Shown: positions 1 through 55,455 of the stretch, piece after piece
How positions within the stretch are numbered: the first letter of the stretch is position 1
Layout of the letters: each line of letters begins with the position of its first letter
IMG/VR virus record: IMGVR_UViG_3300043399_000877
Location: 62,001-126,000 of that record
Length of the DNA: 64,000 nt
Reading direction: 5' to 3' (one strand)
Translations under genes and position numbers: made by a program
Notes under the pieces: model-generated
Database searches by the model: none
Told to the model about the DNA's origin: nothing
What the model saw: the letters and a program-made list of their open reading frames with translations, nothing else

Positions 1-2359
1 CTTCGATAGCATATGTTGCAGATTTGTCGGGATCTTCTTTTATTTTTTCTTCGCCTGCTGGTATCCTAACATCGAAATACTTTGCATATCTCATATAATT
101 GCGTGTATTTTTTGCTATAGCTGCTTCGCCCTTTTCAAATCTCTTACCCAGCACATGTATCGCATACCAGGTTGCCTCTTCTGAATCAGTTGCAAGTGCG
201 GCTTCGCCTTCGGGGAAACTGTGAGCATCATGATCGAACGTCTGCAAATAATATTTTGCAAGTCCAGCGTTGTCGGCAAAACGCATACGCATCTTTTTAA
301 AGTCATAACCGACATCAAAATACGCTGCACTCTCGGCGGCGTTCATTAGGTCACTTATTTTAGAATTTGGATCTTTTACCAGCTTATCTAGATTGTCTCG
401 AATTTCTTTCTTAACTGTTGGTGAAATACTTGCAAGTTTGGTAGCCCATTCTTTACTGCGCTTTATAAGTGCCATTTGCAATTTGGGTGATGCAAGTTCA
501 AGACTACCGTCTTCGTAGTCCCACACCCGCTGATTCTTGAGGTTCTTCTTAAACCAACGCTCGAATGCCACCCGGTCGTAAGACTTTCCGGGACCGATTT
601 GTTTTGGTAAAACTGGAGCATTTTCAGAGCGGTTGCGTTCGCTGTTGTATATTTTTTCAATTGGAACAATGTACTTCCCGGAAAAGAACACAGCCTGGTG
701 TGGTTCGTTGCTGTGTATAACACCGGCGCCCCGACTATCGGTTGCGTACTCGTACCCGAGTATTCGCATAATGCGATTCCATTCAACTGTTTTTTTAGGT
801 GCAGGCTTGCTGCGTCCTTTTTGCCATTCAGTGATCATGTTTTGTACTGGGTCTGCTGATTCTTTTATCTCAATTCCCATTGCTGCGGCTTTTGATATAA
901 ATTGTTCAACATCATCGGCTGAAACATTATCAGCTGGAAATGCTGCGTCAAGCTCAGCGTATGTTATAACTCCGGTTTGTTTGCCTTTTTTAAGTAACTC
1001 GTTCTTTTTGTCGACACCGGGTGCCGCCGGAGCGGCGGGGGTGTTGCCCAACGGTTCAAACTCAGTCTCCGGTGGTTCTGGTGCTGTTGGGGTGTTAGGT
1101 GCGTAATCCGGATTAGCTTTATAAAAGATCGCAAACGGTCGTTTTAACACGGTGCCATTTTCTTTATTTTTAAGAACAACACCATCCTTCTCGATACCGA
1201 TAACAGTAAAAAGTTTCTTGCCTTTTGGGCTGGTCGCGTTGGCATCATCACCGATTTTAAATTTTAATCCGGTTGTGTCTTTGACGTCGTTTCCGTAATC
1301 TTTGTTGGGATCATACAACTCAACATCTCCGTATGTTAAATCGAAGACCTCAGGGCCGTTATCCATGTCAATTTCTAAAGAACCCGATGATTTATATGCA
1401 TAAGAAACCGTTCCGGTTTTTTTATAATATTCATGACCGGGTTTTGTCACTATAACTTTATCACCATGGTGTATTAACTCCGTTTTTGGTAGGTTTTTTG
1501 GAGGCGCAGTCTTTTTCAGGTATTTGAGCGGTACCTCGATGTAATTGCTTTTAGGAGAACCAACCAAAGCCACTGATGCATGTGGCTGATCCATGTTATA
1601 GTCGTTGCCGTCAAAATGCATGCTCACAACCTTAGCCACAACTTTATCCGGTGCTTGGCTGTTGGACCAAGGTTTACTGTAATCCGTAAAAGCTGGGTTT
1701 ATTTCAACAAAATCACCCTTGCCAAAGTCGACCTTTATATCGCCCATTTTTTTCTTCTTGGCTAATTCCGCACCCATTACGCGAGTCACGTTCCACAACT
1801 TTGATATGTCAGGCCCGGCCTTGTCTTCTTCAAAACTAAATGCATTACTTAATGCTTCTTTTTCGATACGACTATATTCTTCTGGATCAAAGCCCTGTGA
1901 CGTCATATACTGACGCAATTTAGCCATATCGCGTTTGAACTGTTGTTCGGTATATCTTGCAATATCCAGTCCTGCATTGGCGTTACGCGGTGTAAACACC
2001 CATACGAACGGTAAGTCGCCCATGTATTCAACTGCGCTCGCATTACCGGTATTTTTAATTACTCTGAGAACATGCGATAGCGGATAGCTATAAACACCCA
2101 GGGGTGTATCGTATCCGCTGCGTGGGTTTACACCGATCTTTTCTATACCAGTGTAACTCACATAAAGGTCTTCCACCGGTGGATATGTTCTACCACGACT
2201 GTCAGATGATCCGGCCAACCGTTCGTATTTTAATAATTCTTCAGCAGTGTTTTCCTGATACTTTTTTAATTCATCATAATCTGCGGACCTCTGATCTAAT
2301 CTTGGTTGGCCCTTCTCACTGCGGCGGCGCTCTACAATTCGGATATCACGATATTTCAT
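1..2359 (-). CDS. Large late/virion-type protein, 3'-truncated by the window edge; ART-like scaffold with inserted KOW/SH3-like domains and a sigma70 region 1.1 domain, plus C-terminal helical repeats
   Basis: Not in the ORF track because it has no stop in the window. ATG at 2359 overlaps the upstream TGA. Manual translation: MKYRDIRIVERRRSEKG...YVSYTGIEKIGVNPRSGYDTPLGVYSYPL...WNRIMRILGYEY...IHSNEPHQAVFFS, paralogous to 2356..4968. Bases 860-1009 encode KKNELLKKGKQTGVITYAELDAAFPADNVSADDVEQFISKAAAMGIEIKE. Confidence 0.85.
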   Translation of the reverse strand, partial: MKYRDIRIVERRRSEKGQPRLDQRSADYDELKKYQENTAEELLKYERLAGSSDSRGRTYPPVEDLYVSYTGIEKIGVNPRSGYDTPLGVYSYPLSHVLRVIKNTGNASAVEYMGDLPFVWVFTPRNANAGLDIARYTEQQFKRDMAKLRQYMTSQGFDPEEYSRIEKEALSNAFSFEEDKAGPDISKLWNVTRVMGAELAKKKKMGDIKVDFGKGDFVEINPAFTDYSKPWSNSQAPDKVVAKVVSMHFDGNDYNMDQPHASVALVGSPKSNYIEVPLKYLKKTAPPKNLPKTELIHHGDKVIVTKPGHEYYKKTGTVSYAYKSSGSLEIDMDNGPEVFDLTYGDVELYDPNKDYGNDVKDTTGLKFKIGDDANATSPKGKKLFTVIGIEKDGVVLKNKENGTVLKRPFAIFYKANPDYAPNTPTAPEPPETEFEPLGNTPAAPAAPGVDKKNELLKKGKQTGVITYAELDAAFPADNVSADDVEQFISKAAAMGIEIKESADPVQNMITEWQKGRSKPAPKKTVEWNRIMRILGYEYATDSRGAGVIHSNEPHQAVFFSGKYIVPIEKIYNSERNRSENAPVLPKQIGPGKSYDRVAFERWFKKNLKNQRVWDYEDGSLELASPKLQMALIKRSKEWATKLASISPTVKKEIRDNLDKLVKDPNSKISDLMNAAESAAYFDVGYDFKKMRMRFADNAGLAKYYLQTFDHDAHSFPEGEAALATDSEEATWYAIHVLGKRFEKGEAAIAKNTRNYMRYAKYFDVRIPAGEEKIKEDPDKSATYAIE

Positions 2360-4968
2360 TGTTTGTATTTACCCACGTAATGTTTTAAATCTTGTACTTC
2401 AACTTCAGAATGATCACCATACACCCCATATGAAACTATTGCAACTCCGGGTTTCGGGAAAGACGTTATATAACCGGTAAACTTTTCAAGGCTGGTGCCA
2501 TCTCCCCACCAATCTGTGCTGAATTCAACAATATCCCCTAACGAGAAATTCGAAGGTTTTTTGTATGTAGATGAATTAAATTCAAAAACTTCACTAGCCT
2601 TTACTTTCAATGTTTTATTATTGATTAAAAATATATATTCGTAGCTCTCTTCGATGCCTACCAACATACCGGTATCACCGTTTTTGTTTACTTTGTATTT
2701 TTCACCCAACTTGAAACCATACCGATTTGGTTTTATTGGAGCGATAAATTCCGGTGCAGTCTCATCAAGTTCACCACCACGGTGCATGTCATGAATTTGA
2801 ATACGTTTGTTGTTCTCGGGAGTATTAGCTATCATTACAAGTTTCTGTAAACCGCTCATAACTTCTGCATACATGTCTCCGGGTTTAAACTTGCTCAGGT
2901 CATCATATAACGGAAACTTTTTCCTATATCTACGAATGGCCGAGGACTTCAACGCCATAACATCTTCGGCCTCCGGCCAAGGGCGTTGAAGAACGTTGAT
3001 TGCGTAATCTGCCGCATTGTCAGGACTTAGTTGAATTTGTGGTTCGCCCTTGGGGAATGCTTCATGCAAGACGTTGGCTGCATAATTATATGCGGTTTCC
3101 GGGTCTTTACTGATAGCCTCCTCGCCAGCCGGCCAAGGTTTACGCAAAATACGAGAAGCATACCTGTATGCTCGCCATGAATCATCGGCTATGGCAGATT
3201 CGGCGGCCGGCCACGGCCCCTTCTTTATCTGCTCTATGTATTCCATGATATGTTTGGGGTTTTTCAAAAACGCTTCGTCGGACACTTGTATGTCTTTAGG
3301 GTCACCGGTGTAAGCACTTTCCAAATCACGTATAGCTCGGTTAATGTCATATTCATCTTCGCCGCTGTTTACTAACTTGGCCAAACGATTTGCCTTGGCC
3401 TTTACCACAAGGTAACCGTATTTGCTGCTGGCGCCGTCGATTATGGACAACCAAAGGTCGTTGTCTACCACCAACTTATTAATAAGTTTTTCTGATTGTA
3501 TCTTAACAGTATCCGAATACAGTCCATGTATTTGGTCGTAGTTCTTGTAATGCACTTTTAACCAACGTTCAAATGTTATCGGGTCGTATTTTCCGCTGTT
3601 TATTTGATCAGTTGTATAAGGTGGTCTCACTCTGATATTTCTCGCAGTATTGCGAATCTTGCCGATAGGGGTAAAATAGGCACCGGATAGGAATACAGCC
3701 TGTGTTTCTTCACTGGGATGGATTAGTCCGCTGTCATTACGATCTACGATGAAATCATACCCGGCGACTCTCATCAAACGGTTCCATTCGATAATACTGG
3801 TCTTGGCTCTGGTATTTAAGTTGCTTTCTTCGCGTATTATGGATTCTTTTGGAAATGTAAAATATGGGTCTGGTTCCGGTTCAAATTCTAAATCATCAAT
3901 AACATCAAAATCTACAATATTATCATCAGAGGCGTCGGGTTCTTTTTTTGGTTCAGCGGCCGGTGATTTTAGCACTTTTAAGTATTCTGGTGGCAAGTCC
4001 TTTACTTTCGTCGCTTTTCCAAATATACTGATGCTGAGTTCGAAGGTTTGCCCGACTTTGTTTACAACCTCGCCTTCAAATCCTTCAAACGGTCCCTTGA
4101 CAACCTCAACAGTGTCACCAATTTTAGGCATAGCCTCTATATTAAAAGAGGGTTTCGATTTTTCGGCAGGAACATAATCTACCGGAACGCTTGTTTTTTT
4201 TAAATCGTTCAACGGAAGGCCCTGTAATGGGTAACTGTTAAAATTACCAGATCCCGAATATATTTTTACATCAGCAGTGGTTTCAGTTTTGGTTACCACC
4301 ATCCCCACAGTGTCGCTCCAACCGGTGTACTCGGGTAATTCAACAAAGTCACCCAGTTTTATATTGGAGGGGCCGGAGATTTTCGAAGCGTTTTTAAAAC
4401 TTCCAAAGTCTTTGCCTAACACTCGAGTTGCATTCCAGAACATAGACGCATATATGGTTGAGCCACTGGTTTGTTTGGCTGATGACCAAGCTTCTTGTAT
4501 TTTCTGATCGATAAACTCTTCAGTCAATCCCTGTTTTGATAAGAAAGATCTGATCTTTTCCATATCCTCAAGAAGCTGTTCTTCCGTATAGGTCGCAAGT
4601 TCCAATCCGCGTTCGGGATTCTTAGGTGTAAACAACCAAATATACGGTTGCTTGCCCATATACGGAACGTCACTCGGGTCATTAGATGCCTTCATACGCT
4701 TCAAAGCATATTCAAGAGGATAGCAATAAACACCGATAGGAGTATTATACCCGCTCACTGGATTGATGCCAATTTTGTCTAATCCAGTATAGCTTATATA
4801 CAGGTCGCGCATATCTATACCTGAGTCAAGGGCCATACGTTCCAAATCTTTTACAGCGTTTTCACGAAACTGATCTAAATCATCACTGCTGGCCCTGTCT
4901 TTGTGAACTCTGGGTACACCTTTTTCGCTTCTGCGACGTTCTACAATTAATAAATCACGATATCTCAT
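2356..4968 (-). CDS. Large late/virion-type paralog; ART-like scaffold with an inserted NusG-CTD-like KOW domain, helical repeats and C-terminal KOW/SH3-like domains
   Basis: 887-aa ORF; probable start MRYRDLLIVE at 4968, just downstream of TGATAAATAC. Contains IGDTVEVVKGPFEGFEGEV...SISIFGKATKV and WPxxExxIxxDxxxAYxYA repeats. Confidence 0.85.
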   Translation of the reverse strand: MRYRDLLIVERRRSEKGVPRVHKDRASSDDLDQFRENAVKDLERMALDSGIDMRDLYISYTGLDKIGINPVSGYNTPIGVYCYPLEYALKRMKASNDPSDVPYMGKQPYIWLFTPKNPERGLELATYTEEQLLEDMEKIRSFLSKQGLTEEFIDQKIQEAWSSAKQTSGSTIYASMFWNATRVLGKDFGSFKNASKISGPSNIKLGDFVELPEYTGWSDTVGMVVTKTETTADVKIYSGSGNFNSYPLQGLPLNDLKKTSVPVDYVPAEKSKPSFNIEAMPKIGDTVEVVKGPFEGFEGEVVNKVGQTFELSISIFGKATKVKDLPPEYLKVLKSPAAEPKKEPDASDDNIVDFDVIDDLEFEPEPDPYFTFPKESIIREESNLNTRAKTSIIEWNRLMRVAGYDFIVDRNDSGLIHPSEETQAVFLSGAYFTPIGKIRNTARNIRVRPPYTTDQINSGKYDPITFERWLKVHYKNYDQIHGLYSDTVKIQSEKLINKLVVDNDLWLSIIDGASSKYGYLVVKAKANRLAKLVNSGEDEYDINRAIRDLESAYTGDPKDIQVSDEAFLKNPKHIMEYIEQIKKGPWPAAESAIADDSWRAYRYASRILRKPWPAGEEAISKDPETAYNYAANVLHEAFPKGEPQIQLSPDNAADYAINVLQRPWPEAEDVMALKSSAIRRYRKKFPLYDDLSKFKPGDMYAEVMSGLQKLVMIANTPENNKRIQIHDMHRGGELDETAPEFIAPIKPNRYGFKLGEKYKVNKNGDTGMLVGIEESYEYIFLINNKTLKVKASEVFEFNSSTYKKPSNFSLGDIVEFSTDWWGDGTSLEKFTGYITSFPKPGVAIVSYGVYGDHSEVEVQDLKHYVGKYKQ

Positions 4969-4990
4969 TATAGTTCCCAAATTAGTTAGT

Positions 4991-5000
4991 GTATTTATCA
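4991..5000 (-). promoter_or_regulatory. Putative late promoter (TGATAAATAC)
   Basis: T4 late-like ATAAATA about 25 nt upstream of the ATG. The same motif precedes 5361..7697, the GIY-YIG gene, 51400..52170, the tRNA-Arg/endonuclease unit and the 63803 gene. Confidence 0.65.
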
Positions 5001-5065
5001 ACACAGGCTTGACAAGCACCTTTGTTGACGTTAGTATATGCTAGACCCCGCTGTTGGTATATCAT

Positions 5066-5371
5066 ATGCATAGAAGCTATATCGGAACATTTCGTTACGA
5101 CCCAAACAACTTATGGAAGAAGATGAGTTTGACCTCTCGCGAGGACGTCTTCAGTCGGCTATCTGATGTACAGCAGCGTTGGTTGGAAAACAATGCGCCA
5201 GACTGGAAGTTTTGGCATGACGAATTCCGACGACTGCATTACCATATCTACTCCGAAACTCCGATATCAGACAGTCGTTTGACTATGGCTGGAATGATAT
5301 TCTATCAGGAAATTCCCAGCCATCCGCCGTTGGGTGAAGAAGCATTGTGGGTTGATGTTTTTAAGAGTTAA
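5066..5371 (+). CDS. Hypothetical small early protein
   Basis: Own TTGACA-N17-TAGTAT promoter at 5009-5037; lies between two minus-strand genes. Confidence 0.6.
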   Translation: MHRSYIGTFRYDPNNLWKKMSLTSREDVFSRLSDVQQRWLENNAPDWKFWHDEFRRLHYHIYSETPISDSRLTMAGMIFYQEIPSHPPLGEEALWVDVFKS

Positions 5372-7697
5372 ATGGTTCAACAGTAAAAGCGTCATCGCCA
5401 TATTCGTCAACTGCATCCTGGTAATCCTGTTGCGTTAACGCTTGTCCGAAGTTCAATCCTGTCAGTCCCGGTTCATCAACAATATATTGGTATTGTTTTA
5501 GTACATTGTAAAACAATGGGTCCAAATTTTTAATCCTAGTCGCCCAACTGGGGTTTTTCTGTATGAGTTTTTGTTGAATATTAGTGGGTGCTACTATTGA
5601 TTTTCTGTCATACTTTGCCGGATTCGGATTTGTTTTGAGAATGTAATCTAGCAGATCTGCGGGCTTGAATTTTTCAGGATCGGCTTCCAGTTCGCGGCTG
5701 TAAGCATCGGCATTGCGTATTTTTTCAACTACAGTGAATGCGGCCTTGCTGAAGAATACCGCCTGAGTGGGTTCATTTTCGTGTATGGTTCCGCTATCGA
5801 AATCAACGGCGTAATCATATTTTAGCACATTTCTCATTAACCAGTTCCATGCAACTGGTGTTCTGGAATTTAACTCGAGGTGACGTGCAGCAAACATTCT
5901 GGTGACATTCCATATTTGGCTGGAGAAAGTTTCTTCATATGCTTGTCCGGCATATTGTTCTACTCTAAAATGAAAATCTTTCTCGTCCATGTAATCGCCG
6001 TTTACGAAGAATTTTTCCATCTTCCAAACGTCGAGTTCATAGTCATCTTTGGTATAATAGTTGGAGCCCAACCACATTGCCTTATCTGGATTGTTGGCTT
6101 TTAACACCCATATAAACGGACTCATGCCGGCAAACGGCACAGCCGCGGCGGTCTTGTAGTCATACATATTTTTGTATATTTCTTTGGTCAACGGGTATGT
6201 ATAAATCCCAATAGGAGTGTCAAACTGACTTCTGGGATTAATTCCTATTTTGTCAACTTTTGTATAACTTATGTAGTAGAATTCGTCTTGGTTTACATAC
6301 TTTTCCAGACTGTCCAGCGCATATGACCTAGGATTCTTGTCAGGATTTCTTCTCGCTTCCGGGACAGATTTGGTCGTGTTTTCAGACAATCCAAAATGTC
6401 GTTGATATTCCTTCCAGATATACGGACTCTGTTTTATAGCTGCTTCACCTGCAGGCCACGGTTGTTTCAAAATCTTTTGGGCATACATCATGGCGGGCCA
6501 ACTGTCTTTTGCTATTGCTGGTTCACCCTTTTTAAATCTTTGCTGATTTAGTGAATGAAATGCATATAGATAAGCACTCATGCCATCTTTTGCTATAATG
6601 TCTTCCAAGTGCGGCGCTGGGCCTTTGTAGAATCGGGATGCTAGATCCTGCGCTGCTCTTGCTTCCCTAACTTCGTTGGAGTACAAAGAAACTTTTGGTT
6701 GACTTTTTATAAATGCTGTGTCAAATTCGTCTCGTTTTTTCTCATCTGACATTAAAATAGTTTTTACATCTGAACCGAGATGCTCCCCGGCTTTACGGTA
6801 ATAATACACTAACTCTTTTCCGTCGAGTTTCCAGAGTAAGAAAACAAAGTTGGCTTCAAGTGCCATTTCTTGACGATCTGTGGGGCCTGGGTCGTTGTAA
6901 TAGCCGTCTTCGTCGTCACCGGTTGGATCGCGTTCGGCATAATCTACTACTTCACCCAAAACTTCAAGCATGTTGTTTTGATTTTTGTCAAACAGCTTGG
7001 CAGTTACCGGATTTTGCTCCATAAAATATCGTGCGTCTTCAACTCCCAGTGGCTGGTCTTGAGAGTCCATAAATTGTCCGCTATCAAAATGGAACTGATA
7101 TTTTTGTTTGCGCTTTTTGTCGTGCCAGATATAAAGTGGACCGTATTTTGTATAATAATTATACATGTTTTTCTTTTCATCGGAGGCCGCCGTACACCAT
7201 TTGGTTCCGCTACCCAATGCACAACTGGCTTCACGAGTCTTGGGAACGGTAAGAATTCCCAGCGGACCGTTGTAAAGCACTTCCGCATCTTTAACTCCGG
7301 CGGCATCTGTATCAGCTGCACCAAGATCGGTATTGCTCAATTTGGCTGCAACATCAGCCAACGATCGCCAATTGTATTGATTTATATCACTATTGATGTT
7401 AAGGCGCTTGTGTTGTCCTTTGGTTTTAACGAATGTTTCGAGATCTGCCCGTAGTTTGTAGATGTCTTCGTATTTGAGCCCGTTCTTTATATATTGACGA
7501 ATTATCCAGACCACATACTGCTTGTTGGCAGTTGGGTCAGCTTCTTCTGCCGCCTGTAGCACTGCCTCCACCGGATCAGCACCCCGACTTTTTAAATATG
7601 CATCGGTCTTTGCCCGGTCAGCAATCGCATTGCTGAAGTTTGCAAGTGTTTTTGATCTGTCATATTCTAGGATTGTTTTGATTTCTTTATATCTCAT
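5361..7697 (-). CDS. Large late/virion-type paralog: N-terminal SCxLGxGTxWC domain, helical repeats, and an uninterrupted ART-like scaffold
   Basis: 788-aa ORF; probable start MRYKEIKTILE at 7697, after TGATAAATA (7718-7726). Contains YISYTKVDKIGINPRSQFDTPIGIYTYPL...KYDYAVDFDSGTIHENEPTQAVFFS. Confidence 0.85.
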   Translation of the reverse strand: MRYKEIKTILEYDRSKTLANFSNAIADRAKTDAYLKSRGADPVEAVLQAAEEADPTANKQYVVWIIRQYIKNGLKYEDIYKLRADLETFVKTKGQHKRLNINSDINQYNWRSLADVAAKLSNTDLGAADTDAAGVKDAEVLYNGPLGILTVPKTREASCALGSGTKWCTAASDEKKNMYNYYTKYGPLYIWHDKKRKQKYQFHFDSGQFMDSQDQPLGVEDARYFMEQNPVTAKLFDKNQNNMLEVLGEVVDYAERDPTGDDEDGYYNDPGPTDRQEMALEANFVFLLWKLDGKELVYYYRKAGEHLGSDVKTILMSDEKKRDEFDTAFIKSQPKVSLYSNEVREARAAQDLASRFYKGPAPHLEDIIAKDGMSAYLYAFHSLNQQRFKKGEPAIAKDSWPAMMYAQKILKQPWPAGEAAIKQSPYIWKEYQRHFGLSENTTKSVPEARRNPDKNPRSYALDSLEKYVNQDEFYYISYTKVDKIGINPRSQFDTPIGIYTYPLTKEIYKNMYDYKTAAAVPFAGMSPFIWVLKANNPDKAMWLGSNYYTKDDYELDVWKMEKFFVNGDYMDEKDFHFRVEQYAGQAYEETFSSQIWNVTRMFAARHLELNSRTPVAWNWLMRNVLKYDYAVDFDSGTIHENEPTQAVFFSKAAFTVVEKIRNADAYSRELEADPEKFKPADLLDYILKTNPNPAKYDRKSIVAPTNIQQKLIQKNPSWATRIKNLDPLFYNVLKQYQYIVDEPGLTGLNFGQALTQQDYQDAVDEYGDDAFTVEPFNS

Positions 7698-7777
7698 ACT
7701 AACTAAGTCCTTTGGTATATTTATCAACAGACTGTTGACATGCTGGACAGCTGACTATATAGTATGCGGGAATAGGG

Positions 7778-10469
7778 GTGAACATGTCTAAGTTTCAATT
7801 TGACAATGTAACGAAAACAACCAACATGGGCAGTCTAGGATTCAGATATGCCTTAACCGGTTGGTGTCTTAGAGATGAATACTTGGAGAAGATAAACATT
7901 CTTCGCGAGGTATTCGGTGAACCCAATCGTCGTCATCAGTTCGGTGGCATACAAAGATACGGACTCTGGTTGAGGGGCGGAAACGACCAGTTGGCGCGGT
8001 GGTTTGTGGGTCCGCGTAAATGGACTTCGCCACCGGGTAAAAATCGAGACCTCTACACTTTTGCATTTCGTTCAGAACGAGACAGACTACTGGCGAGCAT
8101 GATGATATGAAACGTCCTCAAACTGAAATCAGACCCATGGTGCGTATCGGCGCCGTAGACGCTGGCACTCGGTTTGCGAGCTATGTTTATAACGGTCGCA
8201 CCGGTGAAGCCCGAAAGGAGATCATGGCATCACTTACTGAAGCACAACGGGCTTGGCTTAAAGTTCGTCCCTGGGAGGCCCGTGTGGTTTCAGGAAATGG
8301 TACCAATGCGGTAATTTATGCTCGTATGGGGAAATACGGAAACTTTGAACGTGAAGAACTGATAGCACGGATATTGTTTAATGGATAAACGAATCGGATC
8401 CGGTCCCAGGCCGGTAACCACAATCTGGGTCACGAATTACTCGCTAATGCCGTGTCTGGATGTCTTGAGTCATTATATGACACAGAGCGAGCATGAGTTT
8501 ATAAGAAAAAGACCGAACCGTGTGATTCAGTCTGAAAGAACTTTGGTGCGGATTGACGAAACGAGTGGTGTGCAACACCAATACTTTTTGTATGATATCT
8601 GGATGGACCTGACACAACACGAAATCACCCTGGTTGCCCTAAAGTTTGGGTGGCGGGTTCCGTCATGACAAAACTGCTATTAGCACAACCAATAGCAGTT
8701 GAACAAGTATCGCTCCAGCAGCAATTAGGTTGGCTCGATCATAATCATTCATCGGATATTTACTGATGACTCTCGAAGTTGTACCTTTATCCGAACGTTT
8801 AGCATTGTGTGCGAAATGATATACGAATACAAAAACTGCCAGTATATGAATGGTCGGGTAAATCGGAAACGAATTAGAGACTTCTATGACCCCGCTGTTG
8901 AGTTTACAAGTCACAGCTATCATCCGATCTGGGGTAAAGAGTCTAAACATTTCATAATAATTAACTTTGCCAGCGAGTATCATCAACAAATATTCGAGCT
9001 AGAGTTTGGCAGAGCTGATCTAACCGAACTTGACGCTATTCCGGATATGGAGGCAGTAGGTAACTATGGATAAAGACCCCGCTGTTAGTTGTAAATTCTC
9101 TCGTGAAACATTTCATATACGCGATGGACTAACTCTACCGCAAATGAACTATCTACGCAAATACATCAATCGCGGATTGGTGCATGTTGAATATTCGTTT
9201 GGCAGATCCAGAGGTAGAAACATTTACAGTGCTGACCGAGTATACATAGTAAGTGTAGACCCCGCTGTTGGGGAAGTTGTTTTAACTGCAATACGACTTT
9301 TGTTGAGTGAGAACCTATTATGAAAGACCCCGCTGCTGACTGGAGGGAGAGTGTAATCGTTCCAAAAAGGCGTCGTATTATGTTTAGGTTGAAGGCGCCA
9401 TTTAACCGATTTCAAACCGACTTCGTACATCAGCGTATGAAACGTCTTGATTATGATCAGCATCCCCTGGCATCTGGTGGTTATGTTCTGGCATTTTGGC
9501 GGCCGCTTTCAGATCAGGAATTAACCACTCTCATGCTTTTACTGGCTGATACGATAACAGACATACTATATCCGGAAAATGCGAATGAGCCCGAAAACCC
9601 TTAAAGTAGCATATCGTACCAATACAGTATTGCCGATGCTTCTTAGCGGGCCTGCCCTCCGTGACTGGGTCATAGATACTGCAAAACCGGAACAACTGAG
9701 ATTTTTGAATAGAACTGATTGGATCGTTATATACGATTATACTGATCGATCAGCATACTTGCTTATTGATGTATTTTCCGAAAAACAAGCCACACTGGCA
9801 AATATATATTTCGGTTAAAACGCAGATAGCTGTTGACTTCACTACTGTTAGAGCATACTGTTAAGGTGTCGCTGAGCAGGGGCAGAAGATGTATCATTAT
9901 GGAACCATTCATCCCTTGCCAAAAGGGATAACCGTAAACCAGAGATTTATCTGTGTTAAGGCCTATAAACGGCTATGGATACAGGATGTGATCTCCGGTT
10001 ATTTGATTTACACCTATCCGGATTTTTTGAGACCCACGGACCGGACTCTCATGACCGAATTGGCTCGGAGGGCGAGTCTTCGCGGTCATTTGGATATTGC
10101 TGACATAATGGTATTCGAAGCCAAAACTCCACGCGCCCCGGGGTATCGTAAAAGACCCCCCGAGCACGAACCAGATTGGGAGCCATTACCATGAGAGTGA
10201 TAAAACTGGATCATCGATATACTATGTCCAAATACGGATTTACTCACGCAATCGAATGGACCAATATAACGAAATTGCGGCCCAATTCCAAGCCCTATAA
10301 AGACTTTTTTCGAATATCAGATATATGTCGATCTCAATTCGGTGAGAGTTGGTATCGATATCTTGGGACTGACGGTCGCTGGAGTGCCCAACGTGAAAAC
10401 GGTCGATCATTTGCCCGCATATACTTCAAAAGCGAGCGGATGATAACAATGGTTCAACTCTTGCTCTAA
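7778..10469 (+). CDS. Run of nine small (80-110 aa) hypothetical genes, most apparently from one divergent paralog family (7778-8110, 8107-8388, 8381-8668, 8807-9073, 9066-9323, 9320-9604, 9585-9818, 9889-10194, 10191-10469)
   Basis: Overlapping start/stop junctions; promoters at 7735 and 9833. Most share a C-terminal F-x-S-E-x(2-3)-T-hydrophobic-helix motif. Confidence 0.7.
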
Positions 10470-13374: not shown

Positions 13375-13451
13375 GGGGGATTAGCTCAATTGGTTAGAGC
13401 GCCGGACTCATAATCCGTAGGTTGCTGGTTCAAGTCCTGCATCCCCTACCA
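13375..13451 (+). tRNA. tRNA with CAT anticodon, probably Ile2 (lysidine type) rather than Met
   Basis: Cloverleaf: GGGGGAT/ATCCCCT acceptor stem, CT-CAT-AA loop, TTCAAGT T-loop, encoded CCA. The T arm resembles that of bacterial Ile2. Confidence 0.9.
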
Positions 13452-13455
13452 AAAT

Positions 13456-13538
13456 GGCCCCGTGGTGGAATGGTAGACACTGAAGACTTAAAATCTTCTG
13501 CCAATGGCGTGCCGGTTCGAGTCCGGCCGGGGCTACCA
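13456..13538 (+). tRNA. tRNA-Leu(TAA)
   Basis: GGCCCCG/CGGGGCT acceptor stem, CT-TAA-AA loop, long variable arm, encoded CCA. Confidence 0.93.
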
Positions 13539-13623
13539 TGTCTTTGACGATCACATCAGTCTTCGACGGAGGATCTTCAAAATAAAGTAAATATTGAAGC
13601 CCGTGGTGTGATCTTCTAAGACA
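13539..13623 (+). ncRNA. Candidate structured small RNA within the tRNA cluster
   Basis: TGTCTT/AAGACA and GATCACATCA/TGGTGTGATC closing helices, with an internal CTTCAA/TTGAAG hairpin. Confidence 0.4.
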
Positions 13624-13626
13624 TTC

Positions 13627-13656
13627 GGTTCCTTAGCTCAGCTGGATAGAGCAACT
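13627..13656 (+). pseudogene. 5' remnant of a tRNA (Arg-like)
   Basis: GGTTCCTTAGCTCAGCTGGATAGAGCAACT gives the 5' acceptor strand and D arm, then breaks off into GATAAATAC. Confidence 0.75.
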
Positions 13657-13674
13657 AGATAAATACTTTAAGAC

Positions 13675-13749
13675 GCCTCCGTGGTGAAAGGGATATCACA
13701 CGGGTCTTCTAAACCCAGGTTAGAGGTTCGAATCCTCTCGGGGGCGCCA
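13675..13749 (+). tRNA. tRNA-Arg(TCT)
   Basis: GCCTCCG/CGGGGGC acceptor stem, CT-TCT-AA loop, AGAGG-TTCGAAT-CCTCT T arm, encoded CCA. Confidence 0.9.
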
Positions 13750-16692: not shown

Positions 16693-17922
16693 ATGAAGAC
16701 ATACTTAGTAGGTGGGGCTGTCAGAGACATGCTGATGGGCATGGACCCCAAAGATCGTGACTATGTGGTGGTGGGCGCATCGGCTGCACAGATGATTGCC
16801 GATGGTTTTGAGCGCGTGGGCGCAGAGTTTCCGGTGTTCCTGCATCCCGGAACCGGCGAGGAATATGCGCTGGCAAGAACCGAGCGCAAGACCGGTTCCG
16901 GCTACACGGGCTTCTCGACGGAGTTCGGTCCAGACGTGACGCTGGAGCAAGACCTGGCGCGGCGTGACCTGACCATCAACAGCATTGCCTATGACGTGTC
17001 CGGTTACGGCGGATATATCGATCCGTTCGGTGGCGAAGATGACATCCGGAATCGTATGCTGCGGCATACTTCGGATGCCTTCGCAGAAGATCCGGTTCGT
17101 GTGCTGCGGCTGGCGCGTTTTCGTGCCAGACTGGGGCCGACCTGGGTCATTGCACCCGAGACAGTTGAACTGATCTCCAAGATGGCCAAGAGCGGTGTGC
17201 TGACAGAGCTGACTGCTGAACGCGTCTGGAAGGAAATGAGCCGAGCGCTGATGGAACCGTATGCGCGTCTGTTCTTCGATACGCTGATGGAGACCGATTC
17301 GCTGCATGTGATCTTTCCGGAAGTGTATCGACTGAAGACTGCTCTGGAAGCGCGTCGTTGGCATCCGGAAGGTGACGCTTACGAGCATACCATGCTGGTG
17401 CTGTCGCAGGCTGTGGAGTTTGGATTCGATCTCGAGACTCGTATGGCTGCACTGGTTCACGATTTCGGCAAGGCAGCAACTCCGCGAGATCGGTTGCCCC
17501 GACATCACGGGCACGAGGTCACAGGTGTTCCGATTGTTGAAAACTTCTGCAAGCGGCTGCGGGTGCCCAGCACCATGCAGACCAGACTGCCGCGAGTGAC
17601 CAGATACCATATGCACATGCATCGTCTGGATGAGCTGAAATCGTCTACCGTTGTTGACATGTTCGAACGGATGGACGCCTTCCGGGATCTTCCGGTAGTC
17701 ACTCTGCTGTGGCAACTGGCTATCTGCGACGAGCGTGGCAGACTGGGTTCGGAGAATGCCGAGTTCGGACAGCTGTCCCAGATCCTTTACATGCAAGACG
17801 CAGCCCGTTCTGTTCGGTTTGTGGACGTGTTCCCTAGCGGTGAACCGGATCACACAAAAATCCGATCCGGTATGCACCGAGTCCGTGTGGCGGCTGTCCA
17901 AAATCAACGAAACTCCAAATAA
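16693..17922 (+). CDS. cca: Multifunctional CCA-adding tRNA nucleotidyltransferase with HD domain
   Basis: YLVGGAVRD, DRDYVV, EYALARTERK, DLARRDLTIN, EDPVRVLR, HPEGD..EH, LVHDFGK. Confidence 0.95.
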   Translation: MKTYLVGGAVRDMLMGMDPKDRDYVVVGASAAQMIADGFERVGAEFPVFLHPGTGEEYALARTERKTGSGYTGFSTEFGPDVTLEQDLARRDLTINSIAYDVSGYGGYIDPFGGEDDIRNRMLRHTSDAFAEDPVRVLRLARFRARLGPTWVIAPETVELISKMAKSGVLTELTAERVWKEMSRALMEPYARLFFDTLMETDSLHVIFPEVYRLKTALEARRWHPEGDAYEHTMLVLSQAVEFGFDLETRMAALVHDFGKAATPRDRLPRHHGHEVTGVPIVENFCKRLRVPSTMQTRLPRVTRYHMHMHRLDELKSSTVVDMFERMDAFRDLPVVTLLWQLAICDERGRLGSENAEFGQLSQILYMQDAARSVRFVDVFPSGEPDHTKIRSGMHRVRVAAVQNQRNSK

Positions 17923-48974: not shown

Positions 48975-50384
48975 TCAGCCGGTTCCGAGATTGTTTAGGA
49001 ACTGTCGCAGTCTGCTGCCGTCTACTTCAGCTGCGGGGGCCGCCTGCGGTTTTGCACTGTTGGTGGGACCGCTGTTGTTGCCGGTGCGTCGTAGGTTGTT
49101 CATAACCTGGCTGGGAGTCTGATCGGACTCGGCTTCGCTTCCCTGTTCGGCATCGGTGATCCTCAGTGTGTCCACGTCAAATTCCAGATCGATCTTGCTG
49201 CCCACACCCGAACTCGAACGTGTTTTCATCAGCTGTATCTGATATCTGCCGCGTTCTCGCATCGCACGACTGGTAAAGATACCGATCACGTTGTCGGCTG
49301 TCTGGATCTTACTCAAACCACCCGAGATATGACTGTGGTCAAACTCGATCTCTTCCACCGCTGATCGGTTCAGCTGGCTGGCTGTAACAGTAATAGTATT
49401 GAGTTCCATTGCAAGGTCTCTCAATTCTTCACTCACATACTTGTCTTTGACGAACAGGTTCTCGGCGCTGACCTTCACACGCATGGGCATCATAAGATCC
49501 AGATAATCTATCAGCAGTACGTCGATTTTTCTGCCTGTCTTGATCTCGTATTCTTTTACATAGCTGCGTAGGTCATTCGCGTTCTTGCCCGATGGCATGT
49601 ATTTGACCTGGAAGCTACCCGAGTTGCGTCCGATCATTCGAACCTTGAGTTCTACGTCGTCGATGTTCTTAAAAATGTCACGCGTCGTAATTCCGGTAAC
49701 CATACTGTCAATACGCATACTCACTAGGTTTTCACTAAGTTCGAATGTCAGGTACAGTACGTTCAAACCCATCAGCGCCCAGTTGACTCCGAGGTTTGCT
49801 AGGAACAGGCTCTTGCCGGCACCGCTACCGCCGGCAAATATGTTGAGTTCGCCGCGGTTAAATCCGCCAAACAGTCGACTGTCCAGTGCCTGCCAGCCGG
49901 TGCTTACCTGCCCGTTGCGGCTCTTGATGGCTTCTAGACGCTCACGAGGGTTGGCAAAGTAGTCGGTGCCCAGGTCCTTTTGTAGGCCTATCTGCACAGC
50001 ACGTTTAACCAGATCTTCAACCGGACCGTATTCACCCTTCTCCAACAGGTCAGCACTTTTCAAGATTGCTGCTTCCAGTGCTTTGTGTCTCGCAAAGGTC
50101 TCAAACTCGTCCATCAGCCAATCGTAGTGCGCATCCACCATGTCTCCGGGATGCCGTAGATCCACGTGAGCGGCTGCGTTGACCATTTCAAACGTGGGCA
50201 TTGTGTTATACTGATTTACATACTTGAGAATGAATTCGGCTGCGGGCTGTAGGCGGCGCTCAAAGCTGTGAGGGTCGAACACACTCTGACAGCGCACAAA
50301 TGTCTGTGCATCAGTCAGCATAATCTCCAGATAGACCTTCTGGATATCATATCCGTAATCGACGTTTTGTTTTGCCTTGCTCAT
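48975..50384 (-). CDS. DnaB-like replicative helicase (T4 gp41-like)
   Basis: GGSGAGKS, LIDYLDLM, TASQLNRS, QLMKTRSS. Confidence 0.92.
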   Translation of the reverse strand: MSKAKQNVDYGYDIQKVYLEIMLTDAQTFVRCQSVFDPHSFERRLQPAAEFILKYVNQYNTMPTFEMVNAAAHVDLRHPGDMVDAHYDWLMDEFETFARHKALEAAILKSADLLEKGEYGPVEDLVKRAVQIGLQKDLGTDYFANPRERLEAIKSRNGQVSTGWQALDSRLFGGFNRGELNIFAGGSGAGKSLFLANLGVNWALMGLNVLYLTFELSENLVSMRIDSMVTGITTRDIFKNIDDVELKVRMIGRNSGSFQVKYMPSGKNANDLRSYVKEYEIKTGRKIDVLLIDYLDLMMPMRVKVSAENLFVKDKYVSEELRDLAMELNTITVTASQLNRSAVEEIEFDHSHISGGLSKIQTADNVIGIFTSRAMRERGRYQIQLMKTRSSSGVGSKIDLEFDVDTLRITDAEQGSEAESDQTPSQVMNNLRRTGNNSGPTNSAKPQAAPAAEVDGSRLRQFLNNLGTG

Positions 50385-51364
50385 CTTTCGTACCACCGTT
50401 TCATTCTTAATCTTATTTTTAATGCCGAACTCTCGGCAGCCTGTAATATTGAATACAGTGTATATAGTCGGCCGTATCTTTTAACAGCATCTCCTGGATC
50501 TTTTATGTCCGGGTCCCAATCCGGCATGCTAACCATCCAGCCCTGGTCTATTGCTGGTTCGATTAGTTTCTGTCCCGCGGGATCACGGTCCGGTACCACT
50601 ATCACAGTTTTTCTATACTGATTTATCAACAATGCCTGCTGCTCACTAAACTCACTACCTAAAAATGCACTGGCGCCGATCGGCAGTGCGTCTATGGGTC
50701 CTTCGGTAAGGATCATGTATTCTCTGTCATCCGATTGGCGATCCAAATTAAAAACATAGCCGGGCTGCTGTTCTGAAAGATACTTTGGTGTACCCGTGTC
50801 CGTGTGTCGTGAAGTCCAACCCACGGTTTGTCCGCGATACTTGAAAGGTATTATCAGTCGATCGCGATATGCAACGCTGTTGTTCCAGTAAAAATCTCCA
50901 TCTTCAAAATACAGAGAACGAGCTTGCATGTAGCGCAGGACACGCTCAAGGTGTTGATTTACCGGACCGGAGTAGGTGTTTAAATGCACCGTATTTTCCG
51001 GAAGTGGCATACTAACAAAGTTTGGAAGTTCTATCGATCGTTGTTTTACTACAACGCCTTCGTTTAACTTCATAACATTCAATGCTAGCTGAGTTATTTC
51101 AGAATCCGGAACCGACAACCATCCCAACAACTTTTTAAACTTGGGCGCGAGCTGACGGCCCGGTTGCCAGCTTGCCTTAAACCCACAATTAAAGCAATGA
51201 TAGGTTACAATATCGCCGTTTTCTAAGACGCCACCGCGCTGGCGCTTGTCGGGATTCTGTCCGTTATGCTGGCAACAGACAGCGTTGAAGCTAACCCACC
51301 CGCTGGGCGTAGTTTTCCTCTTAACGGGCAAATGTTTTATCAACAGCTCAGATACTATGCTCAT
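50381..51364 (-). CDS. DNA primase (Zn ribbon + TOPRIM)
   Basis: CC..YHCFNCG, RLIIPF, LTEGPIDA, VPDRDPAG, KDPGD. Confidence 0.9.
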   Translation of the reverse strand: MSIVSELLIKHLPVKRKTTPSGWVSFNAVCCQHNGQNPDKRQRGGVLENGDIVTYHCFNCGFKASWQPGRQLAPKFKKLLGWLSVPDSEITQLALNVMKLNEGVVVKQRSIELPNFVSMPLPENTVHLNTYSGPVNQHLERVLRYMQARSLYFEDGDFYWNNSVAYRDRLIIPFKYRGQTVGWTSRHTDTGTPKYLSEQQPGYVFNLDRQSDDREYMILTEGPIDALPIGASAFLGSEFSEQQALLINQYRKTVIVVPDRDPAGQKLIEPAIDQGWMVSMPDWDPDIKDPGDAVKRYGRLYTLYSILQAAESSALKIRLRMKRWYER

Positions 51365-51399
51365 AGTTTAATATAGCATAATTCTATGAAAAAGTCAAA

Positions 51400-52170
51400 T
51401 TAGTTTCGTATTACAACTCGTCTTATCAAATTTTCAGGATCAGTACTTGTTCTGATTCTTAAGTTTTGATAAACGCCGTTGAAGTTTACACACACCGGCG
51501 CAGTGTCCGATGGTGATACTGCGACTGTTGCCACAGTAAACCAGTTGAGACCTATAGAACTTTCTAAGGTTGCTTCTATAACCACATCGCCGGAGTATCC
51601 GTTGTTGTACACCACCGCAGTATAACTTCCGCCGGGATTGGTGTTTAATGCTGATGTGGCATTCACAGTAGCATACCAGTTTTGATTTATTTTGTAAAAG
51701 TTATCAAACACTAGATTTTCTTTAGTGTCCGGGTAACTCTGACCGTCTACATAAATAATTCCAGAGCTAGTAAAATCAGTATTTGTATATGTAATATTTC
51801 TTTTTCCAGTATTGTCTAAGATATATACATTATACTTTAAATATTGTTGTGGAATATCAAGGAGATCAGTATCTGTAATAGTAACTGTAAAATTGCCCAA
51901 GGTAGCACGGGTGGAGCCGTCGTCAATAACTTCACAGGGTTTTTCAATAATACGCCGTTGCTGATCATCAAATGCAACAAAATACGGAGTTCCGGTTATT
52001 GGAACAGCCTTTTGATCAGCGTTAAGCAATCTAAAATATATCAAATTGTCAATTCCACGAGTTATGCGAATATTTCTTTGAAACACGGGTCTATACTCCA
52101 CTCCGAGACCGGCATGGTTGGAAATAATGTCAACTTGATTTTTTACTAAATATCTAGGTGTTAATTGCAT
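51400..52170 (-). CDS. Hypothetical beta-rich late protein
   Basis: 256-aa ORF with TATAAATA just upstream. Confidence 0.7.
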   Translation of the reverse strand: MQLTPRYLVKNQVDIISNHAGLGVEYRPVFQRNIRITRGIDNLIYFRLLNADQKAVPITGTPYFVAFDDQQRRIIEKPCEVIDDGSTRATLGNFTVTITDTDLLDIPQQYLKYNVYILDNTGKRNITYTNTDFTSSGIIYVDGQSYPDTKENLVFDNFYKINQNWYATVNATSALNTNPGGSYTAVVYNNGYSGDVVIEATLESSIGLNWFTVATVAVSPSDTAPVCVNFNGVYQNLRIRTSTDPENLIRRVVIRN

Positions 52171-52200
52171 GCCATACTCTTTTAAGTATTTATATAGAAA

Positions 52201-52572
52201 ATGTTATTGAAGGATATAGAAGAAAACTTTCCATTTATAAGCGTAGTAGCTTACGGTGGTAACGAATATGTTGGTATAATAAGTAACCAGGATCAGTATG
52301 TTACCTGTATGTATGTCTACGAGATTTTGAAATCACAAGAACACAAACAGTTATTATTAAGTTTAGGAAATATATGGTGGTGGGAATCAAATAGAATGAT
52401 TCCCATTAATATTTTTTTAAGGAAAGAAATAGAACCACTAAAGTATGCGTTAATGAGTATGAACAGTAAAGATGTGCGCATATGTATAGGGCCAACTGTA
52501 AACTTAAACAATCTTGCGCTCAAGCGAATCAAAAAAAAAAGTGTACAGTTGGTAATAAAAAAGAATGACTAA
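52201..52572 (+). CDS. Hypothetical protein
   Basis: 123-aa ORF filling the gap; WWWESNRMIPINIFL motif. Confidence 0.7.
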   Translation: MLLKDIEENFPFISVVAYGGNEYVGIISNQDQYVTCMYVYEILKSQEHKQLLLSLGNIWWWESNRMIPINIFLRKEIEPLKYALMSMNSKDVRICIGPTVNLNNLALKRIKKKSVQLVIKKND

Positions 52573-53126
52573 CCAGCGTACGATTCACAAATAAGATTCA
52601 TATGAACTATAACAGCGTGTGCATAAGATATGGCATGCGACTTTTTAAAATAATAATCGTCACCCACAGGTTTAACCCATATCTCTCTCATAACAGTGTC
52701 CCAGTCTTTCCCAATTAGGTGACGTTTTGCCGGACGTATCATAGCCAAAACTGCTGCAAGTTGCTCTACACTTTTGGGACGCATCTGCTTTAATATATCG
52801 CTGTGTCCATTTATGTGAAAAACCTGATCCACAAATTCAGCATGTTCCAATAACTCCCATATCGGTTCACGTTCCACTAATTCTTGCAAATGCTGATTAT
52901 CTTTTACATCGCGGTATATGCTTACGTTGAGGCAGTCCACTTTAAAATAACCCAGTTGCTCAGCATCTTTGTAATTTATATTAGACAGATTGGTTATGGG
53001 ATTATACGGAATTTCTGAAAAGTAAACCCCGGTCAAGTGGGGTTTACCGTTTTCCAATGCGGCTGTGCGATGTTTAAGTAAGTTTAATAATCTTGATCTG
53101 TCCGGAAAGTCAATATCAATGTCCAT
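52569..53126 (-). CDS. Miniature DNA polymerase III alpha (DnaE)-like protein
   Basis: DIDIDF, HLTGVY, YFKVDCLN, LAMIRP and FKKSHAISYA motifs in DnaE order within only 185 aa. Confidence 0.8.
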   Translation of the reverse strand: MDIDIDFPDRSRLLNLLKHRTAALENGKPHLTGVYFSEIPYNPITNLSNINYKDAEQLGYFKVDCLNVSIYRDVKDNQHLQELVEREPIWELLEHAEFVDQVFHINGHSDILKQMRPKSVEQLAAVLAMIRPAKRHLIGKDWDTVMREIWVKPVGDDYYFKKSHAISYAHAVIVHMNLICESYAG

Positions 53127-53878
53127 TATAGACCTGCCTGTTTTACTACCTGTTTTACCAGTTCCATGTCCGCTGGGTGTTTTTTAAACTTTATACTCCA
53201 CTTTTGCGGATCCATTACCTTGTACACCATAGTCAATTGCTCGTCACTCAATTGCTGTAACATGTTTTTTCCGGTCTCGCAGTTTAGTATAAGCCATGGA
53301 CTTATTTTCCCATCGCGAATATGCCATACTGCTCGATTATGATTTACATATCTAAAATAATGATTCCAAACACTGCCGTTCTCCTCCGCCCACTCAGTCA
53401 TGGTTGTAATAGAACGTTCTAATGCTGTCTCTAAATCTTCTTTAAAAATAAGTTCAAGAACATATCGCTCATAAAGATCATCATTACTCCACTTGTCAAT
53501 CTTTTCACCACTCCTTACAATCCAGTCAATGTACTTGTCAGGATACAGTGGCCTAACATTGCTCATAAAACTTCCGAATTTAACAAATGCATTGTAAAAT
53601 TGGCTTTTGCAAAATTCGTCATACGTCTTGATTCCGCGATAGTTTGCACTGAGTTGATAAAATCTCACAAAAGTTTGATAGCCAAATTGTACACGCTTTT
53701 CATTCTTTTGCAAGTGTCTGCGCTTTTGTTCACATATGTGAACTTGCAACGTGTTTTCTTTTGCAAAACTTTTGCTGCAATATTCACAAGTAAACGGCAA
53801 TTTTTTTACCTTAGCTGAGGACTGGGTTGTGGATTTCTTCGAGTTGTTTAAGTTCTTCTTTTGTAAGTATTCCAGCAA
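53126..53878 (-). CDS. Hypothetical protein with N-terminal Zn finger (start uncertain)
   Basis: FTCEYCSKSFAKENTLQVHIC. Confidence 0.7.
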   Translation of the reverse strand: MLEYLQKKNLNNSKKSTTQSSAKVKKLPFTCEYCSKSFAKENTLQVHICEQKRRHLQKNEKRVQFGYQTFVRFYQLSANYRGIKTYDEFCKSQFYNAFVKFGSFMSNVRPLYPDKYIDWIVRSGEKIDKWSNDDLYERYVLELIFKEDLETALERSITTMTEWAEENGSVWNHYFRYVNHNRAVWHIRDGKISPWLILNCETGKNMLQQLSDEQLTMVYKVMDPQKWSIKFKKHPADMELVKQVVKQAGL

Positions 53879-54281
53879 GTAACTCTACCTCATCTCGTTT
53901 CATATTTGGATAAATGCCTTCCAAAAACTTGACAGTCTTACTGGCTGCCCGTTTGGTACCAATCCACTCGTGCCGTTCTTTTTTGCCAGTGTTGCCGCAC
54001 ATACACAACAATAGCCATTGTAACTTGGGATGCTTTGACCCCAAAACTGCCCAATTCTTATTGTAGTATTCGTTAGTTTTAATTACCGCAAGCGCAACGT
54101 CATCAACTGAATATTTTGAGTATTTGCTATCCGCCAAAGCACTCATGTATCTATTTAAATTCCACATGTCGGCTTTGATTTCTTTTTGGCCTTCTTCTCC
54201 AGCCACGTCCCACAAATCTCGCATGCCCAGGTCCAGAGCTGGGATCATCTCTTTGAATAAGTCTATATGTTTATTTGCCAT
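53811..54281 (-). CDS. Clamp-loader small subunit-like protein (T4 gp62-like)
   Basis: LNRYMS..NEYYN..HPKLQWLLL..HEWI..FLEGIYP..LTKEELKQL pattern; replication context. Confidence 0.5.
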   Translation of the reverse strand: MANKHIDLFKEMIPALDLGMRDLWDVAGEEGQKEIKADMWNLNRYMSALADSKYSKYSVDDVALAVIKTNEYYNKNWAVLGSKHPKLQWLLLCMCGNTGKKERHEWIGTKRAASKTVKFLEGIYPNMKRDEVELLAGILTKEELKQLEEIHNPVLS

Positions 54282-55445: not shown

Positions 55446-55455
55446 TTAAACCCTC

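Follow-up and report, generated by a model that had tools for sequence, protein, structure and literature searches.

Region 1.1 of sigma70 serves housekeeping sigma factors as a gatekeeper at their N-terminus; to our knowledge it is known in no other setting, and our literature search found no description of a phage effector or any other non-sigma protein that contains it. The question raised by the locus described here is what a copy of this domain does in the interior of a large phage protein. The DNA analysed is a stretch of 64,000 nucleotides (positions 62,001 to 126,000 of IMG/VR record IMGVR_UViG_3300043399_000877; hereafter the window) from a huge, uncultured phage that occurs in fresh water and wastewater, and the gene in question, hereafter paralog A, lies on the minus strand at the first end of the window. 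A first-pass annotation made from the letters of the DNA had proposed that 50 residues of this gene are a captured sigma70 region 1.1, used outside any sigma factor as a decoy or as a module that binds RNA polymerase (RNAP). Our analysis established the homology, placed the module in an insertion of a large unannotated protein family, and led to a tentative reading of paralog A as an injected effector that the module addresses to the transcription machinery of the host.

The region 1.1 module and its locus

Translation of the minus strand from ATG 2359 gives one frame that stays open for 786 codons, up to the first base of the window, and the full-length protein has about 1004 residues, as judged from the 98%-identical homolog P0001 and from L003:11494-14508 on a related contig. 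In the translated frame the 50 residues are residues 451-500 (nucleotides 860-1009); they agree exactly with those quoted in the first-pass annotation, are in frame with ATG 2359 and are preceded by a stretch rich in Pro, Ala and Glu. The gene was absent from the list of open reading frames (ORFs), as had been remarked, because the list omits ORFs that run off a sequence end and this one runs past window position 1. The features concerned are as follows.

1..2359, minus strand: paralog A, with its start at ATG 2359 and truncated at the window edge after codon 786
848..1012, minus strand: sigma70 region 1.1 module (residues 450-504), enclosing nucleotides 860-1009
1013..1084, minus strand: Pro/Ala/Glu-rich linker (residues 426-449), predicted to be disordered, with a predicted local distance difference test score (pLDDT) below 50

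Sigma70_r1_1 (PF03979) was the single Pfam match of paralog A in hmmscan (E-value 5.7e-12; 45.9 bits against a gathering cut-off of 22.5), with target residues 453-503 covering profile positions 8-58 of 81. The 50-residue segment by itself matched the same family with an E-value of 1.8e-12, and the orthologs and seven other relatives also exceeded the cut-off, with scores of up to 66.9 bits. A phmmer search of PDB sequences aligned the segment with residues 12-65 of E. coli RpoD (E-value 5.8e-5; about 35% identity, counted by hand from the alignment), and region 1.1 of T. maritima and B. subtilis was among the matches too. The hallmark residues G-K, G-x-x-T-Y-A-E, P-x-D and M-G-I are kept in the RpoD alignment. 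A profile of 12 phage modules matched RpoD region 1.1 with E-values of 1.6e-16 (the 652-residue RpoD 7ye1_F) and about 4e-14 (E. coli RpoD), and PF03979 was present in 100 of the 100 ESM Atlas clusters nearest to the segment (top score 0.95).

The AlphaFold2 (AF2) model of the module, built from 12 sequences, consists of three helices and two short strands, with a pLDDT of 74-82 in the core and disordered flanks. Its six best Foldseek matches in the PDB were all sigma region 1.1, and the E. coli holoenzyme-Gp2 complex 4llg was among its matches. The model aligned with 5mww at a TM-score of 0.67 (root-mean-square deviation 2.4 A over 60 columns) and with 6psq_L at a root-mean-square deviation of 2.4 A over 58 columns and 33% identity. 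The Foldseek E-values were weak (0.014-1.6) because the domain is only about 55 residues long. The significant Pfam match and the agreement of the model with solved region 1.1 domains bear out the proposal that a region 1.1 domain with its helical bundle is embedded in this phage protein.

Sigma regions 1.2, 2, 3 and 4 were not found by domain scans of either the 786- or the 1004-residue protein at E-values up to 1, so paralog A is not a sigma factor, and the module stands outside one, as had been claimed. The only PHROG match of the protein is a sigma-factor family, and this match covers region 1.1 alone. The module is a true homolog of sigma70 region 1.1 that comprises the three-helix core without the acidic linker. 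A word-indexed search with the segment returned only the orthologs and no close RpoD donor, and so no host could be named.

Four homologs of paralog A from other data sets (98, 82, 72 and 49% identity; 928-1012 residues) all have PF03979 at the same place, and the same three-gene arrangement is present in a 381,886-bp IMG/VR contig. A check against independent contigs, which covered window positions 1-5000, found the region spanned in estuary, wastewater and aquaculture metagenomes of other studies; one independent contig of 14.6 kb contains the whole of positions 1-5000, and another covers positions 432-1133 with three differences. Because the orthologs keep the position of the module and independent contigs span the region, it is not an assembly chimera. 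Searches of 50,697 phage records gave no match to window positions 1-5100 by megablast or to P0001 by tblastn, and the sole tblastn match of a typical member of the family described below (P0083) was an unannotated 735-kb uncultured phage; there was therefore no cultured relative or annotation to draw on. A promoter and terminator scan of window positions 1-8200 gave 23 candidates, which is not above the 18.3 +/- 4.4 found in shuffled sequences. A wastewater RNA library contains short contigs that map to paralog A and to the neighbouring paralog B (window positions 1212-1359, 2732-2878, 3755-4051 and 4874-5000), and these could be transcription or carried-over phage DNA.

The scaffold family, its insertions and its predicted fold

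The module lies within a domain that is split in paralogs A and B and un-split in a third paralog, C. The features of the three genes are as follows; the fold given for the scaffold, that of an ADP-ribosyltransferase (ART), is a prediction discussed below.

1745..2197, minus strand: N-terminal half of the scaffold domain of paralog A, predicted ART-like (residues 55-205)
1085..1744, minus strand: first part of the insertion (residues 206-425), with three beta-rich SH3/KOW-like modules recognised by eye and GD.V.V...G motifs
620..844, minus strand: C-terminal half of the scaffold domain, predicted ART-like (residues 506-580), with the motif EWNR..GY....D..G.IH..EP.QAVFFSG
2..262, minus strand: start of the helical PWPxxE-type repeats (residues about 700-786), which run on past the window edge
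2356..4968, minus strand: tandem paralog B, 870 residues from ATG 4968, with its scaffold split at the same site as in paralog A
3925..4092, minus strand: NusG/Spt5-type KOW module of paralog B (residues 293-348), in the insertion
5361..7697, minus strand: paralog C, 778 residues from ATG 7697, with helical repeats and then the un-split scaffold
5706..6284, minus strand: un-split scaffold domain of paralog C (residues 472-664)

Local mapping showed that residues 55-205 and 506-580 of paralog A are the two halves of one domain of about 200 residues. An exhaustive phmmer search with a full-length ortholog retrieved 2978 representative proteins at E-values of 1e-3 or lower and 1016 at 1e-10 or lower. 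The two halves are contiguous in paralog C and in most relatives, which are proteins of 300-500 residues, and across the family the gap between them varies from 0 to about 325 residues, which identifies this loop of the scaffold as an insertion hot spot. The insertion of about 300 residues in paralog A contains the beta-rich modules, the Pro/Ala linker and region 1.1. The SH3/KOW-like modules at residues 206-425 gave no Pfam match and no profile confirmation. Full-length homologs have further beta modules after the PWPxxE repeats, beyond the window edge, and the assignment of these repeats as DUF4116/LRV-HEAT-like in the ESM Atlas is only a lead.

No Pfam, PHROG or source annotation was found for the scaffold family, and a precomputed Pfam domain was present in none of the 120 listed matches (of 499) of a profile search. 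Among PDB sequences, the scaffold profile gave only spurious matches to designed helical repeats. The contigs that encode members of this large family reach 572 kb, and several copies are often present; the phages concerned are T4-like and huge phages. Several relatives of 1460-2250 residues (P0007-P0010, P0012, P0015 and P0018) consist almost wholly of the PWPxxE-type helical repeat that follows the scaffold in paralog A; they are probably cellular rather than phage proteins, since some have N-termini that resemble signal peptides.

The stop of paralog B overlaps the start of paralog A (ATGA, window positions 2356-2359), an arrangement that suggests translational coupling of the two genes. 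The KOW module of paralog B matched phrog_6386, a "transcription antiterminator", with an E-value of 2.8e-7 and the C-terminal domains of Spt5 and NusG in the PDB with E-values of 3.6e-5 to 1e-2; its score against Pfam KOW was 21.7 bits, just under the cut-off of 22.3.

The best 150 relatives include at least three architectures with region 1.1. It lies inside the scaffold insertion in the ortholog group, P0005 and P0036, and at the extreme C-terminus after KOW domains in P0016, which has two clear ones (Pfam KOW, 55.9 bits, clearly above the cut-off), and in P0011, which has one. Two copies are present in P0017 (residues 668-720 and 758-807) and P0019 (residues 720-777 and 811-860). In both of these proteins the first, internal copy is followed by a strongly acidic tail (net charge -8 to -13), which recalls the sigma70 linker, and the first copy of P0019 also has a 9-residue insertion. 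The recurrence in several architectures excludes a single accidental capture and makes region 1.1 a recurrent building block of the scaffold family. The gene for P0016, in a related 323-kb contig (L007/L008), is directly beside a DnaB-primase-helicase block that is syntenic with window positions 48975-57425, where the window has no family member.

The scaffold of paralog C was modelled with its flanks (window positions 5658-6320, minus strand) from 44 sequences, and the AF2 model reached a pLDDT of 90.9 and a predicted TM-score of 0.87. Foldseek searches of BFVD with this model matched ART-PolyVal-like and PolyVal ADP-ribosyltransferase proteins (E-values 2.2e-6, 3.3e-5 and 7.5e-5; probability 1.00), and large polyvalent proteins were also among the matches. 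The PDB match was 9k3a_B, chain B of the cyanophage A4 pre-ejectosome (E-value 5.9e-5); the ART of PARP4 reached an E-value of only 2.2. From its chain length, 9k3a_B is probably gp28, which has about 1,060 residues, takes part in ejection and contains an alpha+beta domain that has no assignment (PMC12002296). ART-PolyVal was present in 60 of the 100 named ESM Atlas clusters nearest to the scaffold (score 0.92), and AcrIF11 ADP-ribosyltransferase was found in others. The predicted fold of the scaffold is thus ART-like, closest to ART-PolyVal and AcrIF11. The catalytic triad of ART-PolyVal consists of a His in strand 1, a Tyr in strand 2 and an Asp or Glu in strand 5 (PMC5512222). In the scaffold family, G-I-Y in strand 2 is invariant, and so is the Glu (E-P-x-Q) that lies three residues before the strand QAVFF, ahead of strand 5; the comparison with a real ART-PolyVal sequence was made by eye. 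The invariant scaffold residues, in the numbering of the model, are K24, N28, Y40, D173, H180, E183 and Q186.

A candidate route into the host and competing explanations

The N-terminus of paralog A has one further feature.

2330..2359, minus strand: N-terminal peptide MKYRDIRIVE of paralog A, 10 residues ending in I-x-E, which resembles the T4 capsid-targeting sequence (CTS) with its cleavage motif for the prohead protease

Paralogs B and C begin with MRYRDLLIVE and MRYKEIKTILE, and nearly all family members have a short N-terminal peptide that ends in hydrophobic-x-Glu and is followed by [AK]-R-[RK]-N-P. The pattern h-x-E followed by [AK]R[RK] was present within the first 40 residues of 134 of the 192 family members, compared with 2-3 of 192 in internal and shuffled controls; in these 134 proteins the Glu is mostly at positions 8-11 and L, I or F is at P-2. 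Ten of the 11 region 1.1-bearing proteins in the set have a 10-residue peptide of the capsid-targeting kind. T4 IPII and IPIII start with MKTYQEFIAE and then A (NC_000866), paralog A with MKYRDIRIVE and then R, and some family members with MKTF.(E/Q)F..E and then AR. The CTS of T4 is the first 10 residues of IPIII, of which residues 8 and 10 govern processing, the prohead protease gp21 cleaves after L/I-X-E, and Alt likewise loses an N-terminal propeptide (PMC9026906). One family member, P0135 on a 160-kb contig, is flanked by gp15-like and terminase genes and shares their strand; the cluster also comprises Peptidase_S77 (gp21), the T4 scaffold protein (T4_CASP), Gp23, gp13, neck protein, sheath and tube. 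On contig L004 a bona fide Pfam ART-PolyVal gene is the divergent neighbour of a family member (L004:8838-9413, minus strand, and L004:10001-10993, plus strand). That ART-PolyVal gene begins with MRFIELLE and then G, a peptide of the same kind, and a CTS-like N-terminus may therefore be common to unrelated cargo in these phages.

The resemblance of the family N-terminus to the T4 CTS makes loading into the prohead and injection probable for paralog A. The short propeptide ending in L/I-x-E would bring the protein into the prohead, where a gp21-type protease would trim it, and the protein would enter the host with the DNA. In the host cell the tethered region 1.1 would act as an address label, docking at the place of sigma region 1.1 in the main DNA channel of RNAP or on another partner of region 1.1. 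Docking would put the enzyme-like domain beside the transcription machinery, which it could modify or block in the manner of T4 Alt, a head-packaged and injected protein that ADP-ribosylates RNAP alpha (PMC5512222, PMC9503650). RNAP binding, packaging and catalysis are all steps that we infer. Our best reading of paralog A, held tentatively and at somewhat less than an even chance, is that it is an Alt-like effector which is injected and which its region 1.1 module directs to the transcription machinery of the host; a fragment of sigma may thus serve the phage as an address label for RNAP. The NusG-type KOW that paralog B has in the corresponding insertion points to several paralogous effectors, with address labels that were each borrowed from a host transcription factor. 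A general form of this reading is possible and more doubtful: T4-like and huge phages would have a large family of head-packaged, injected enzymes with one loop or the C-terminus fitted with host transcription domains (region 1.1, NusG-type KOW) as address labels, each paralog would be sent to a different site on RNAP or a partner within seconds of infection, and the module would be the first sigma-domain targeting module outside sigma.

Several observations weigh against an injected ART-like effector that is guided to RNAP. With respect to packaging, L/I-x-E is a short motif, the prohead protease of this phage was not seen in the DNA examined (S77 was present only in another family-bearing contig, L006), and paralog A adjoins no head genes in the window or in the related contigs L001 and L003. 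This last point is not decisive, because T4 ipII and ipIII also lie away from the head genes, between denV and e (NC_000866). With respect to the enzyme, the ART assignment comes solely from predicted structure and language-model features. The TM-scores of the ART matches in BFVD are moderate (0.35-0.56), Pfam ART-PolyVal (PF18760) was matched by none of 44 family members at E-values of 0.1 or lower, and hhalign of the scaffold profile with one bona fide ART-PolyVal protein gave a probability of 0.2, which is no signal. Strand 1 reads Y-I-S-F-T, so that the conserved His of the triad is absent, as judged by eye from the conservation pattern. With respect to the module, the net charge of its core is only -2, it lacks the acidic linker found after region 1.1 in sigma70, and the tail at that place is slightly basic (+1), so an electrostatic, DNA-mimicking fit to the channel is not obviously retained. 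Core charges range from +2 to -8 in the related phage modules and from -3 to -10 in three RpoD proteins. Low acidity as an argument against a region 1.1 function is weakened by the one bacterial RpoD core with a charge of just -3.

The module could instead be a decoy or DNA-mimicking plug that fills the main channel of RNAP or competes with region 1.1 of sigma70 itself, so that binding inhibits host transcription and the rest of the protein is a carrier. The fold is genuinely that of region 1.1, the AF2 model places the module on a flexible tether, and the channel is where sigma region 1.1 sits and where T7 Gp2 and Ocr act (PMC3778932, PMC7064336). The weak charge and the missing linker tell against a plug. 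Every copy of the module is, moreover, inserted in or attached to an enzyme-like domain that is strongly conserved, and the many invariant polar residues of this domain argue that it is the scaffold that does the work. The ART-like context of the insertion, the capsid-targeting motif, the recurrence of the module and the KOW of paralog B are together better explained by an injected enzyme-like effector with a tethered module for targeting than by a free decoy, and we regard the decoy as unlikely.

A role in the virion was also considered, in which region 1.1 and the KOW/SH3-like modules would be adaptors for the scaffolding core or for DNA spacing and their likeness to transcription proteins would be a matter of ancestry only. 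Consistent with such a role are the CTS-like N-terminus, the one member within a head gene cluster, the many repeated small beta modules and helical repeats of the protein, and the variable charges of the modules. Against it stands the joint recurrence, in several architectures, of two modules of the transcription apparatus, region 1.1 and NusG-type KOW. Most family members are proteins of the packaged type and have no such modules, so the modules are not needed for packaging, and a virion role appears distinctly unlikely.

The module might also bind a sigma factor instead of core RNAP. Region 1.1 is autoinhibitory in free sigma70, where it packs against the DNA-binding regions. A homologous module acting in trans could silence the host sigma in the manner of an anti-sigma factor, or it could complement a phage sigma that lacks region 1.1. 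No phage sigma or RNAP gene was present among the window ORFs scanned, and we consider binding to sigma improbable. A decayed or rearranged phage sigma factor is virtually untenable, even though the sole PHROG match is to a sigma-factor family: a sigma-factor remnant is refuted by the domain scans, which found no signal of another sigma region, and the frame is intact at 72-98% identity across samples, with the module in the interior of the protein and flanks that belong to a different, large family.

Genomic context, significance and comparison with known systems

The phage has T4-like traits, which include rIIA, a DnaB-type helicase, a primase, a tRNA nucleotidyltransferase (window positions 16693-17922) and three tRNAs (Met-CAT, Leu-TAA and Arg-TCT, clustered at 13375-13749 on the plus strand). 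Divergent from the three large paralogs, nine small head-to-tail ORFs of about 80-110 residues, several with overlapping stops and starts, occupy positions 7778-10469 on the plus strand and are possibly an early gene block. The G+C content of the window is 0.42 at 1-8 kb, 0.55-0.59 at 16-48 kb and 0.37 at 52-64 kb, and long ORFs are present on both strands in the G+C-rich part. Other domains detected on the minus strand were a C2H2/jaz-type zinc finger in a 250-residue ORF of the replication block (positions 53126-53878; E-value 7e-5) and a family-8 glycosyltransferase domain in a 574-residue ORF (positions 61232-62956).

What is new at this locus is the domain architecture, a sigma-derived module in an ART-like scaffold, together with the unannotated family that bears it; injected multidomain effectors that modify the host are already known. 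The family shows the assembly of phage effectors by the grafting of host-derived recognition domains onto one enzyme-like scaffold. If the module docks on RNAP, it would be a natural and portable ligand for the main channel, would indicate a new way in which huge phages take over the host early in infection, and would give a functional handle on a family of about 3000 representative clusters that is now without annotation.

Compared with region 1.1 of group-1 sigma factors (RpoD/SigA; PF03979; 2k6x, 5mww, 4llg/6psq), the phage module has sequence homology and the same predicted three-helix core with two short strands, and it keeps G-x-(I/L)-T-Y-x-E-L and M-G-I-x-(I/V), including the position of E. 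coli I53. It differs in its place, which is internal in paralog A (residues 450-504) and internal or C-terminal in relatives, and in having no regions 1.2-4 with it; the copy in the window also has a lower net charge and no acidic linker after it. T7 Gp2 and Ocr share the proposed site of action in the DNA channel of RNAP, and Gp2 works together with sigma70 region 1.1 (PMC3778932). Both are small dedicated inhibitors unrelated to sigma, whereas the phage module is a homolog of the sigma domain itself.

T4 IPI-IPIII resemble paralog A in the 10-residue N-terminal peptide with a hydrophobic residue at position 8 and Glu at position 10; the cargo of paralog A is unrelated and much larger, and its packaging and cleavage are predicted from the peptide. 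ART-PolyVal (Iyer et al. 2017, PMC5512222) and AcrIF11 are the best structural and language-model neighbours of the scaffold, and the polyvalent proteins with ART-PolyVal are, like the proteins described here, multidomain and probably virion-delivered effectors. The scaffold differs from them in lacking a PF18760 match, an hhalign signal and the conserved His of strand 1, and in having invariant residues of its own. A further parallel is T4 Alt, which is likewise a large phage protein with an ART-type fold, predicted in our case, and an N-terminal propeptide with an L/I-x-E site, set in a T4-like background (rIIA, T4-type spanin); like Alt, paralog A is probably aimed at the host transcription machinery. 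Alt differs in that it belongs to the R-S-E (Alt/VIP2) clade and has no sigma-derived module, whereas the scaffold is nearest to the H-Y-D side of PolyVal and AcrIF11, with a triad that, as judged by eye, is not intact.

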